Assembly (NCBI GenBank): GCA_043228905.1
Contig: JBHGNT010000006.1
Location: 1,550,001-1,614,000 of the forward strand
Reading direction: 5' to 3'
Source: Azolla caroliniana
Taxonomy: Eukaryota > Plantae > Polypodiophyta
Length of the DNA: 64,000 nucleotides
The notes beneath the pieces are model-generated. The model did no database searches. It had not been told where the DNA came from and worked only from the letters and a program-made list of their open reading frames with translations. Of the stretch, positions 1,166-5,060 are shown in pieces (within the stretch, counting starts at the first letter, position 1; the number at the start of each line of letters is the position of its first letter). The translations under genes were made by a program, and so were the position numbers.

Positions 1166-1722
1166 GTTAAACCAACGTTAATACACCTAATCACTACAAA
1201 ATAAGAAATAAAATTGCTTAATTAATAGATAATAACTACATGAGAAACACATGAGTTGTCTAGATCAAATAGATTATTGTTAATTAATTGTTGTAGAAAA
1301 TCTATATGGGGTAAAGTGGATCTTAGAAGAGGCATATTGAAGAGAACAATAACCAAAAAGTAGTCCATATGTAGGGGCACCGAAAGACCCTTTATGTGAG
1401 AGCTCTTACCTTTTATCCAAGTTAGAAACTTTATAGCATCCTCCTCACATTACAAGCCCATTGAGCATTGGCCATTGCCACCTAATAGTCTCTTATTTTT
1501 GACAAATTACAATATGAGCTTGTTTCTTCTACATATTTCACTTATGAACAACAATTGAATTTCGAAATATTGTGGTGTGCATGTGTTCCTTTGTGCCATC
1601 CTTTTAGCACACCCTTTTTAGCTAAGACAACCCAAATGGGTACCTTTGTATGAACTATAAATTGAGTAAGAAGTAAGAAGCTAACTAGACTGGTTTTGAT
1701 CTCTTATCTGCATTTCACATAT

Positions 1723-1740
1723 TGGTGGAGGTGCGGGGTA
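1723..1740 (+). promoter_or_regulatory. Primer-binding site complementary to the 3' end of tRNA-Ala
   Basis: TGGTGGAGGTGCGGGGTA lies 3 nt after the LTR CA. It pairs with the recalled plant tRNA-Ala 3' end ...UACCCCGCAUCUCCACCA with one G-U wobble. Confidence 0.8.
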
Positions 1741-1820
1741 CCAGTCCCCCACGTTCAAGCATTCACCTCTTCCCCCTCACCTTAGGTTGCCCACTAACAA
1801 GTTTCCTAGATCCCCCTCCT

Positions 1821-2083
1821 ACACGATAGCCCTCCTGTCCCCCACCTTAGCCAAGTCTAGGTGGCCCTTAGTCCACAAGAGCGATTGATCTCTATCCGCC
1901 TATAGCCCTCCTGTCCCCCACCTCAGCCAAGTCCAGGTGGCCCTTATTCCATAGGAGGAATTGATCTTTCTTTGCCAATTGATCTTTCCCCGAGCCCCCT
2001 CCGACACGATAGCCCTCATGTCCCCCACCTTAGCCAAGTTTAGGCGGCCCTCAATCCACATGAGCGATTGATCTTTATCCGCC
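1821..2083 (+). repeat. Three ~78-bp tandem units in the element leader
   Basis: ATAGCCCTC.TGTCCCCCACCT.AGCCAAGT..AGG.GGCCCT...ATTGATCT repeated at ~1821, ~1901 and ~2004. Confidence 0.85.
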
Positions 2084-2115
2084 GATTGCCAACTCGTTTT
2101 TCATCACTAGCCCCG

Positions 2116-2370
2116 TCCAACTATCAGGGCCGGCAGTTCTGCGGGGATGTCCTCAACGCCGTTGTAGCTCAACTTAGTGTCCAGTAGATGTTTACGTCCC
2201 CATGCCATCCTCAGACAAATGACCTCACCGAACGCCTCAACAAGACCCTCAAGATGGAGATTGCCGCTTACATCGATCCATGCCACAAAACCTGGGATCA
2301 AATCTTGCTTTTTGTCATCCATGCCTACAATACATCCGTACAAGCGTTGACATGGATCAACCCTTTTTGA
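2116..2370 (+). pseudogene. Ty3/Gypsy-type integrase core remnant
   Basis: Reads SNYQGRQF...LSVQ*MFTSPCHPQTNDLTERLNKTL...TWDQILLFVIHAYNTSV...PF. This matches the rve core SD.G.QF...YHPQTNG..ER.N.TL...W...AYN, with the second catalytic D lost and an in-frame stop. Confidence 0.8.
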
Positions 2371-2701
2371 GCACTCCATTGGTGTAACCCTCACCTCCCA
2401 CCAGAATTGTCCATTCGAAAACTGCCAACATGGATAATGCCACTTGGGAGCTCTATCTCCAACAGATGTTCCCACTCGTTCGACAAGCCACTACTTATGT
2501 TAATGTTCCTGTTCTTGCTCCTTGGTGTCTTGTTTCTCTCAAGGGGGGGAAAATATGTGAAATGCCAATAAGAGATCAAAACCAATCTAGTTAGCTTCTT
2601 ACTTCTTACTCAATTTATACTTCATACAAAGGTACCCATTTGGATTGGCTTAGCTAAAAAGGGTGTGCCAAAAGGGTCAGCTTAGGTACATGCATCCTAA
2701 A

Positions 2702-3138
2702 TGTTACCGACCGGCAAAGGAGTCCAGAGTGTGAAACGAAGGAGTTATTTAATTATTAGGAATGGTTGTATGTAAGCTATTAGTAGTGTGGACGGACGGA
2801 CCGGAATCGGTATGCCGTTCCGGATCCGGACCGATCCCGAATAGGTGTGGATGGCACCGTTTTGTACTACAGACCGGAAACCTATTTAAAGGCCCGGATA
2901 CAATGTAATGAAGAGTGGTTAATTAATAAAGCTTAGTGTTGTTATCTCTCTGTGTTAATTGCCGTTCTGCATTCATTGTTATATCTTACGCATGTGAATA
3001 TTAAGGACGATCTTGCTAAGTAACCTAATTAAGTCGAATTAATCGTTGAGTCTAATCCTGTTGCCGTAACACCCCTTTGGTGAAGTGTCTTCCGTAGACA
3101 CCCTGTGTTAGGCCATTGTCCGGCCCTAAGAGTTAACA
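2702..3138 (+). mobile_element. Solo LTR (437 bp) of an unrelated family inserted in the inverted LTR
   Basis: TGTTA...TAACA termini; 5-bp TSD CTAAA at 2697-2701 and 3139-3143; internal TATTTAA and AATAAA. Confidence 0.9.
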
Positions 3139-4259
3139 CTAAAAAGGGTGTGCTAAAAGGGTGGCACAAAGGAACATATGCACACCACAATATCACTCCT
3201 CAAAGGAATATTAAAACCAAAAAATATGACATTATCACCCTTAAAGTTCTTATGTCTTGTAAATGACCAATCAACCTCAATTGAAGAATCAAGAAAATGA
3301 GTGATTGACATAAACAATCCTTGAAACTTTGACCAAATAGGTTTATTACTGAAAAGCAATAATATAAAATGATGAGTACTTGAACACTGCAAAGTAAGCA
3401 ATTGCGTATTGCTAATCCCAAAGGAAAACCCCAATGAAATTCTTCCAAATCAAGATTATGATTAAAAGTGGGAATTTAGAACGCTAACTAGGTTTCAATG
3501 TACACACACACATTATTTTTTCCCGATATGTTTTCCCATAAAAATATCCTCCATTGGTATTAACAAAAAGTGGCCAAAGGCAATATACAAAATAGTCCAC
3601 TATTACAAAGAAAATTGCAACATAATTAACTAGAAAACTATTGAACACTCGTGTACCTTCAACAGTCTCAACAACACTAGGTTAAAAAAAACCCCTCTTT
3701 TTACAAGCTAAATATGGATTTTTGACCTTTATCACCAAAGTCTCTGCCACATATATTGCTCAACATTCCTTCTATTTTGATGCAATTTGATAGCATCATT
3801 TGTCATTCTACATCTCACATAATGCCTGCTAAAGGACAATGAATTACTGCTCATTTTGATTATCCTGCTTCTCCAAAGCATGCCTTAGCGCTGCTTCCAA
3901 GGTTCACAAAAACAGATTAAATCTCTCTAACATCCATACAAAATCAACCACCTATAGAACTCCTTGCAATGTGAACAAAAATTTGCTGATGAATTCCAAA
4001 GGTTGGTGTCAAAAAATGTATGCCGATGACAACAACATGTAGAGCCTTTCACTCCCTAGAAATGCTTCATCCTCCATTAACATCATCCATCTCTACCACA
4101 AATTTTGACTATATATATATATATTCGCTTTCCATCTGTAAGGACGGCTTCGCCAAGCAAAGTTGTCCTTATAACATCAGCCATGTCAACGACGGATATT
4201 GATACCCAAATGATGTACCTATGACAACAAAATGACATAGTAACCTCATCACCTGAAGA

Positions 4260-5060
4260 AAATATGCTTCGACCCCCACACCATCTTCAGTCATCCTTAT
4301 CACAAAAAATTTTTCATTCAGTCCACATAAACCATCTCACCGATTAGTGCCAAGTTCCTGTACAAACAACAAAATGAATCTAGACCATCATTACTCATCC
4401 TCTCGTCATGTTACTATGCTTCAATCCCCACCGCCACACCATCATCACTCATAGTAATGAGAAACCTAAAATCTTCTTCATTTAGTCCACATCAACATCT
4501 CGATCTCGTAGACCATCTTGCCATCTCGCCGATGCCCACCAATATCCTGTATTGATAGCAAAAAATGAGTCTAAAAGTTTCCTCACCTATTCATGATAGT
4601 CGGCTTCGACCCCCCCACCATCTTCACTCATCCTTATCATAGAAAAAAAATTCTTCCTTCAATCCACATCAACCATCTCGCCGATTACCACCAAATTCCT
4701 GTACAAATAACAACAAAATGAATGTAGAATGTTTCCTCCTCCCCTCATGATCTGCTTTGGCCTCCACACCATCATCACTCATCCTCTCATCATGGCAATA
4801 TGCTTCAATCTCTACCGTCAACATCACTCATCCTAAAGAACAACATAAAATCTTCTTCATTCAATCCACATTAACATCTGGCTGACCATTTTGCCATCTC
4901 GCCAATTATCATTAACATCTTGTACAGACAACAAAAAATGAGTCTAAAATGTTCCTCACCTTCTCAAGATATCAGCTTTAGCCCCTACAACATCATCACT
5001 CATCCTTACAAAAAAATAGAAAATGTACTTCCTCCAATCCACATCAATCATCTCGCTATC
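4260..5060. repeat. Degenerate tandem array, unit ~150-190 bp, about 5-6 copies
   Basis: Recurring GCTTC(G/A)...CACACCATC(T/A)TCACTCATCC, TTCA.TCCACAT, CCATCTCGCC and CCTGTACA.A.AACAAAATGA.T blocks. Confidence 0.75.

Follow-up and report, generated by a model that had tools for sequence, protein, structure and literature searches.

A retrotransposon copy with one long terminal repeat reversed in the genome of Azolla caroliniana

Complex insertions of long terminal repeat (LTR) retrotransposons, which arise in one round of reverse transcription, were described by Sabot and Schulman in 2007 (PMC1950507), and such a single-event complex insertion is the nearest described phenomenon to the element discussed here. 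This element occupies positions 1571-3189 of a stretch of 64,000 nucleotides from the fern Azolla caroliniana (GenBank assembly GCA_043228905.1, contig JBHGNT010000006.1, positions 1,550,001 to 1,614,000 of the forward strand), which is called the window below and whose positions are used throughout. In both cases an abnormal LTR arrangement is found inside a proper target-site duplication, as a unit that the integrase of the element itself inserts at one time, following a wrong choice of template (PMC1950507). However, the published insertions have three direct LTRs and two internal regions, whereas the Azolla element has two LTRs, one of them reversed, and a single internal region, and both of its outer ends are U3 ends. 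The word "inverted" has 0 occurrences in PMC1950507.

Retroelements with inverted terminal repeats are represented by the DIRS elements, for example DIRS-1 (PMC7192593, PMC3950715), and the literature search for integrase-type LTR elements with inverted LTRs returned DIRS papers only. The DIRS elements use a tyrosine recombinase and not a DDE integrase, unlike the present element with its integrase remnant, TG..CA ends and 4-bp duplication. DIRS elements are not known to make a target duplication. Among DNA transposons, the Ginger elements have terminal inverted repeats (TIRs) of 40-270 bp, TGTNR ends and 4-bp duplications (PMC2836005). The Azolla element is like Ginger1 and Ginger2 in its TGTNR termini, its TIRs of tens to hundreds of bp, its 4-bp duplication (AT-rich in Ginger2) and its homology to gypsy-type integrases (PMC2836005), but Ginger1 and Ginger2 are cut-and-paste families defined by their transposases, without a primer-binding site (PBS), a polypurine tract (PPT) or an LTR parent, whereas here we have one copy of a direct-LTR family. 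The resemblance exists because the same kind of integrase is used, and the TGTGG end and the 4-bp duplication do not discriminate a Ginger element, because the parent LTR family has both.

Structure of the element and its insertion site

Positions 1300-3500 of the window were read directly, and repeat analysis and blastn within the window were carried out in addition. The element is composed, in this order, of an LTR on the plus strand, a TAT spacer, a tRNA-Ala-type PBS, a tandem array, an integrase remnant, a PPT and an LTR in reverse (Table 1). This order, as well as the ATAT on both flanks, had been proposed in a preliminary description made from the sequence, and both were borne out by the three approaches. 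The two arms of the inverted repeat pair 1600-1723 with 2552-2675 (124 nt, 94%, blastn E 1e-50) and 1567-1621 with 3139-3193 (55 nt, 96%, blastn E 4e-18), which is far beyond chance. A second copy of the element was not found in the window by blastn, and the sole Rfam match on 1400-3400 is at chance level.

Table 1. Coordinates of the features of the composite element and of its target-site duplication
Feature	Position	Strand	Evidence
Left copy of the target-site duplication, ATAT	1567..1570	.	Sequence; AATAT single in the X10 empty-site contig
5' LTR, 149 bp, TGTGG..CACA; 43 bp deleted internally in comparison with the family LTR of 192-207 bp	1571..1719	+	Family LTR alignment
TAT spacer from LTR to PBS; first bases copied into minus-strand DNA	1720..1722	+	CACA/TAT/TGGTGG identical in 9/9 metagenome copies
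PBS, complementary to the tRNA-Ala 3' end; carries G instead of the family's A at 1731	1723..1740	+	Family PBS TGGTGGAGATGCGGGGTA
Internal tandem array, units of ~76 and ~106 bp	1802..2090	+	Repeat analysis; skip/repeat joints; blast to L002, L004, L007, L009
Integrase core remnant, C-terminal part, ..HPQTNDLTERLNKTL.., with stop codons	~2092..2400	+	Frame translation, Pfam
PPT AAGGGGGGGAAAA, plus-strand primer site	2541..2553	+	Homologous to family PPT ..ttgtttctctcaGGGGGGAAA/
ATA, reverse complement of the TAT spacer; first A common to the A-run	2553..2555	-	Inverted-repeat arms reach 1720-1723 / 2552-2555
Reversed LTR, U5-proximal part; pairs with 1600-1719 and includes the 43 bp missing from the 5' LTR	2556..2701	-	Repeat analysis, blastn, LTR alignment
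Nested solo LTR, 437 bp, TGTTA..TAACA, of an unrelated, very abundant family	2702..3138	.	Ends and duplication read directly
Reversed LTR, U3 end; pairs with 1571-1621; outer end ..CCACA	3139..3189	-	Repeat analysis, blastn, contigs
Right copy of the target-site duplication, ATAT	3190..3193	.	Sequence and contigs

The read evidence consists of Logan contigs of four runs, X1, X2, X3 and X10, the last of which comes from a related organism. Contig depth over the flanks corresponds to a single copy in these runs, and the depth over the element exceeds it by a factor of hundreds to thousands. The left flank is joined to the U3 start by contigs covering 1000-1594 (X1 and X2) and 1224-1594 (X3), and the reverse-complement U3 end is joined to the single-copy right flank by contigs covering 3166-3596 (X1 and X2), that is, both flanks adjoin U3 (TGTGG) ends in independent short-read contigs. 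Furthermore, one contig of 604 nt in X10 lies on 1199-1565 and 3189-3300 with zero letters between them and represents the empty site. The empty site reads ..TTTCGA-AATAT-CACTCC.. with a single AATAT, and the filled site reads ..AATAT/TGTGG...CCACA/ATAT-CACTCC.. (a slash marks a border here and below). Since the flanks are contiguous in the empty site, the composite went in as one insertion, and the 4 bp ATAT are a genuine target duplication (AATAT if the last A of the LTR is counted as target). The preliminary description had raised the possibility that the two flanks come from different loci and had pointed to the empty orthologous site as a thing to look for; the X10 contig, in which the flanks are adjacent and ATAT occurs once, provides this site and removes that possibility.

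A second version of the left flank (1224-1565) is present in X3. It is ~10% diverged, stops at 1565 and carries variants of the X10 organism, while the other version is near-identical to the window and is joined to the LTR. The diverged version is probably an empty homeologous or allelic site, and the presence of two versions in X3 suggests that the source is hybrid or polyploid or that the sample is mixed.

The inner junction of the window copy reads GGGGGGG-AAA-ATA-TGTGAAATG. In every copy the reverse complement of the 5' LTR context is CCACCAATA/TGTGAAATG (CCACCA-ATA-TGTGAAATG), and that of the 3' LTR context is ..ATAT/TGTGAAATG, in which the ATAT comes from the flank. The ATA at the junction matches the reversed TAT spacer and does not match the ATAT beside integrated 3' LTRs. 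The flipped block comprises TGTGG..CACA and TAT, so that it starts with the first base of U3 and ends with the TAT after U5, and its borders are the start of the plus strand (the PPT/U3 border) and the start of the minus strand (the spacer/PBS border). Because the spacer is retained at the inner junction, the joint was not made by integrase. Autointegration, or any other inner joint made by integrase, was rejected since integrase removes the TAT spacer, which is still present. Two details of the preliminary description have to be corrected at this junction. The reversed LTR had been said to begin exactly where a normal 3' LTR would begin, but ATA or TA intervenes between the A-run and the LTR, whereas the family reads GGGGGGAAA/TGTGG. 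The microhomology AATATGTG, which had been thought to permit a template switch, was derived from the window copy itself; the normal PPT/LTR junction is without the TA, and the overlap amounts to 0-2 nt (A/T).

The parent family

The element belongs to a family whose other copies were collected as nine metagenome contigs, L001-L009, by means of a pattern of the LTR end and the PBS; the same pattern gave 0 matches against viral contigs. The window copy is like the family in LTR sequence, TAT spacer, tRNA-Ala PBS, tandem array, integrase remnant, PPT and 4-bp ATAT duplication, and is unlike it in that its 3' LTR is reversed and the spacer is carried along. The family LTRs, of about 195 bp, range from 157 to 207 bp in these loci, mostly 192-207 bp. 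Five loci (L001, L003, L004, L008 and L009) were taken into the LTR alignment, and the TGTGG..CACA ends are found in both window LTRs and in L001, L004, L008 and L009, while L003 starts with TGTCG. The sequence CACA/TAT/TGGTGGAGATGCGGGGTACC is present in 9/9 loci. The same is true of the PBS TGGTGGAGATGCGGGGTA, which is identical to nt 1-18 of an antisense probe published for tRNA-Ala (PMC4506996). The read contigs all have A at 1731, where the window copy shows its one PBS mismatch. A tRNA gene for comparison with the PBS was not found in the window by ARAGORN.

The normal junction GGGGGGAAA/TGTGG, with the PPT directly before a direct 3' LTR, occurs in L004, L007 and L008, where its longer context is ..ctcaGGGGGGAAA/TGTGG.., and in L007 two direct LTRs surround the internal region. 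In addition, joints from 2547 to 1571 with AAA between them are present in 4/4 runs and correspond to the direct 3' LTRs of other genomic copies. The integrated U5 ends are followed by ATAT, and since CACA/ATAT occurs twice in L007, the 4-bp ATAT duplication of the window copy fits the habit of the family. The inverted junction of PPT and reversed LTR is seen in 0/9 related loci, and among the family copies examined the window copy is the sole one of its kind, all the others being normal. As the direct orientation holds for the family and not for the window copy, the latter is an aberrant member and not a different family.

Two further observations were made on the family loci. L004 (1-1615) and L008 (1-1084) run from internal region through PPT, LTR and PBS to internal region again, and are either tandem elements with a common LTR or paths of short-read assembly closed through the LTR. 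L002, L005 and L007 constitute a subfamily (for example, L007 minus strand 931-1172) with ~36 extra bases in the LTR after TGTGGTGT and an LTR of ~242 bp.

Origin of the reversed LTR

The composite is probably an aberrant complementary DNA (cDNA), the terminal LTR block of which was turned before integration and which was inserted through two U3 ends. Integration of a one-off aberrant cDNA was one of the two readings offered in the preliminary description, and it agrees with the empty site having a single ATAT, with the U3 ends at both flanks and with an inner junction at the two priming borders. We infer that the flip took place in the cDNA, and two routes to it are conceivable. The bottom strand of the locus may be read as plus-strand strong-stop DNA, minus the copy of the PBS, running into ordinary minus-strand sequence from the PPT. 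On route (i), a plus strand that had come to a halt at PPT-AAA would have paired, 3' end to 3' end (0-2 nt, A:T), with a strong-stop plus strand whose sequence ends in ..CACATAT(T), and each would have served as template for the other, giving a blunt duplex, both ends of which would be 5' ends set by the removal of the PPT primer. On route (ii), a break of the cDNA where the plus strand is discontinuous, at the PPT, would have been followed by end joining of the LTR fragment in reverse. Both routes would lead to a duplex that ends on either side in a natural U3 terminus (..CCACA-3'), and the family integrase would then have inserted this duplex by its normal concerted reaction with the usual 4-bp stagger. 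Later events would have been the 43-bp deletion in the 5' LTR, the insertion of another element into the reversed LTR and its collapse to a solo LTR, and ~5% of point divergence. Routes (i) and (ii) both fit and are not told apart by the present data.

The two LTRs are identical at 141/149 positions (94.6%; divergence 5.4%) and have in common one private base and one subgroup state. The flanks differ from those of the organism with the empty site by ~8% (39 differences in 479 nt, X10). Since the LTR divergence is lower than the flank divergence, it is possible that the LTRs were identical when the element was inserted after the split.

Several points weigh against an origin from one turned cDNA. 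The inner junction (~2540-2560) is taken from the assembly, no spanning contig being among those listed, and 2-3 junction bases matching the spacer are expected by chance in a few percent of cases. The 5' LTR is at least as close to some other copies (L008, 95.3%; L001, 94.6%) as to the reversed LTR (94.6%), so that the similarity of the two LTRs does not establish an origin from a single cDNA, and they may come from two cDNA molecules. A cDNA intermediate of this kind is moreover a proposal for the family, made from the sequence of the locus. Finally, a joint from 1719 to 3200 is found at single-copy depth in X1 and X2, in which the U5 end of an LTR (..CACA) is set directly onto sequence like that from 3200 onward, skipping ATATCACTCC. 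This joint was not seen in X3 or X10 and is possibly a paralogous locus; when the flanks were compared by blast with the window and with the family loci, no source for it emerged.

Among the other explanations, a rearrangement after integration is unlikely. It would start from a normal element, or from two insertions of opposite orientation in the same ATAT target, and proceed by chromosomal inversion or deletion. The strong preference of the family for ATAT-like targets makes a second hit in the duplicated ATAT conceivable, the copy is old and otherwise altered by the 43-bp deletion and the nested solo LTR, and the LTRs are not demonstrably sisters. However, recombination between inverted LTRs keeps the orientation of the outermost repeats and cannot give a U3 end at the right flank, so this candidate was rejected on logic. 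Two insertions into the same ATAT followed by the precise loss of a 3' LTR predict AAA-ATAT-TGTG, whereas AAA-ATA-TGTG is seen; otherwise, a single deletion must begin at the PPT/U3 border in one of the elements and end at the PBS/spacer border in the second. The double insertion was therefore rejected as well, its predicted junction being off by one base and both of its breakpoints being needed at priming borders. For rearrangements in general, breakpoints no more than 1-2 nt from both of these borders are very unlikely by chance. It is very improbable, too, that the outer junctions are real and the interior is an artefact of assembly, collapsed or mis-joined from, for example, a larger tail-to-tail pair. 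Such an error is favoured by the summed contig depth of the family, hundreds to thousands of times that of the flanks, and by an inner junction that is taken from the assembly. Yet the collapse of repeats joins homologous sequence and cannot invent the adjacency of the PPT to a reversed spacer and LTR, the anomaly itself, namely the U3 ends at both flanks, was confirmed in independent runs, and the private substitutions across the interior (e.g., at 1731, 1755, 2045, 2204 and 2255) are those of one specific old copy and do not resemble a consensus-like collapse.

The remaining explanations concern mobility as DNA. A mobile family with LTR-derived TIRs, Ginger-like or in transition to such a form and moved by a gypsy-type integrase, would account for a TGTGG end that fits TGTNR, and in Ginger2, too, the TIRs measure 50-180 bp and AT-rich targets are duplicated over 4 bp (PMC2836005). 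This explanation is nevertheless improbable in the extreme: the other copies examined all have direct LTRs at the PPT, the PBS and PPT are retained, the window holds no second copy and no related locus has the inverted junction, and the parent LTR family already has the same termini and the same 4-bp duplication. The family intermediate between LTR retrotransposons and Ginger-like TIR elements, which was the other reading in the preliminary description, finds no support, given the direct 3' LTRs of L004, L007 and L008 and of the 2547-1571 joints. It would also be a long shot to suppose that reversed-LTR cDNAs with two U3 ends, or with two like ends, have been made and integrated repeatedly in several LTR families of this genome, some of them perhaps being re-mobilised as DNA by integrase. 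If true, it would be a living example of the step from an LTR retrotransposon to a Ginger-like DNA transposon.

The locus is a fossil of a copying error in an otherwise ordinary small plant LTR family and not a new class of element. The error is preserved base for base: the two priming sites delimit the flipped block, and the product nevertheless entered the genome with a normal target duplication. The locus offers natural, in-genome evidence that a gypsy-type integrase is able to perform concerted integration with two U3 ends and that LTR elements can gain TIR-like ends in one step. Because annotation tools for LTR elements require direct repeats, such copies evade them and can be taken for TIR transposons. 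Double-stranded RNA from two inward-facing promoters had been suggested in the preliminary description, and no RNA run was found to contain the stretch. Convergent or hairpin transcripts are conceivable because both LTRs keep a TATAAAT motif; a read-through transcript would be predicted to form a long hairpin matching the family LTR and might feed silencing.

Internal region, nested insertion and surrounding sequence

Apart from its reversed LTR, the element is a small non-autonomous copy of a Ty3/gypsy-derived LTR retrotransposon, dead and old. Its sole coding trace is the broken remnant of an integrase core, and since gag, protease and reverse transcriptase were not found in the element, it is non-autonomous. 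The remnant is recognized by the translation of the frame beginning at 2092, which is interrupted by stop codons; the open reading frame 2188-2367 matches Pfam rve_3 with E 4e-4, under the gathering score, and the matches to integrases in PDB are weak (E 0.3). The number of array copies differs among the family members, as is seen from skip and go-back joints in the read contigs. The signs of decay in the window copy are the PBS mismatch, the stop codons, the deletion and the nested solo LTR.

The reversed LTR covers 634 bp (2556-3189) owing to the nested solo LTR and is 192 bp long without it, which is the family norm. The preliminary description had assigned LTRs of ~150 bp to both ends, but it is the 5' LTR that deviates, by its 43-bp deletion, and the reversed LTR has 192 bp once the insert of 437 bp is subtracted. 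Between the arms of the inverted repeat lie 461 bp bounded by a 24-bp direct repeat. The family LTRs carry this 24-bp motif twice with a spacer of ~22 nt between the copies, so that, according to the family LTR alignment, the 461 extra bp are composed of 22 nt of normal LTR and the insert at 2702-3138, and the deletion in the 5' LTR falls between the repeated motifs. A long-LTR variant, or a deletion between the repeats, was considered for the 461 bp and rejected by the family LTR alignment together with the read joints.

The insert is flanked by a 5-bp duplication, CTAAA, at 2697-2701 and 3139-3143, and in Logan contigs other copies of the LTR jump 441-442 bp at this place, with 2-5 letters in common at the joint. 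Its summed contig depth reaches up to ~12,000 times that of the flanks, and this 437-bp solo LTR family is among the most abundant repeats of the genome and its relatives. In 4/4 runs the contig depths summed over the blocks 2786-2879 and 3068-3161 reach about 10,000 times the value for the flanks.

The right flank is itself repetitive at 3444-3800, where the summed depth is 950-22,000 as against ~40 at 3256-3443, which places the insertion in a short stretch of single-copy sequence with repeats on either side. Farther to the right, at 4200-5060, there are diverged direct repeats of the families D2-D8, which are C-rich on the plus strand and have spacings of ~150-220 and 340-380 bp.

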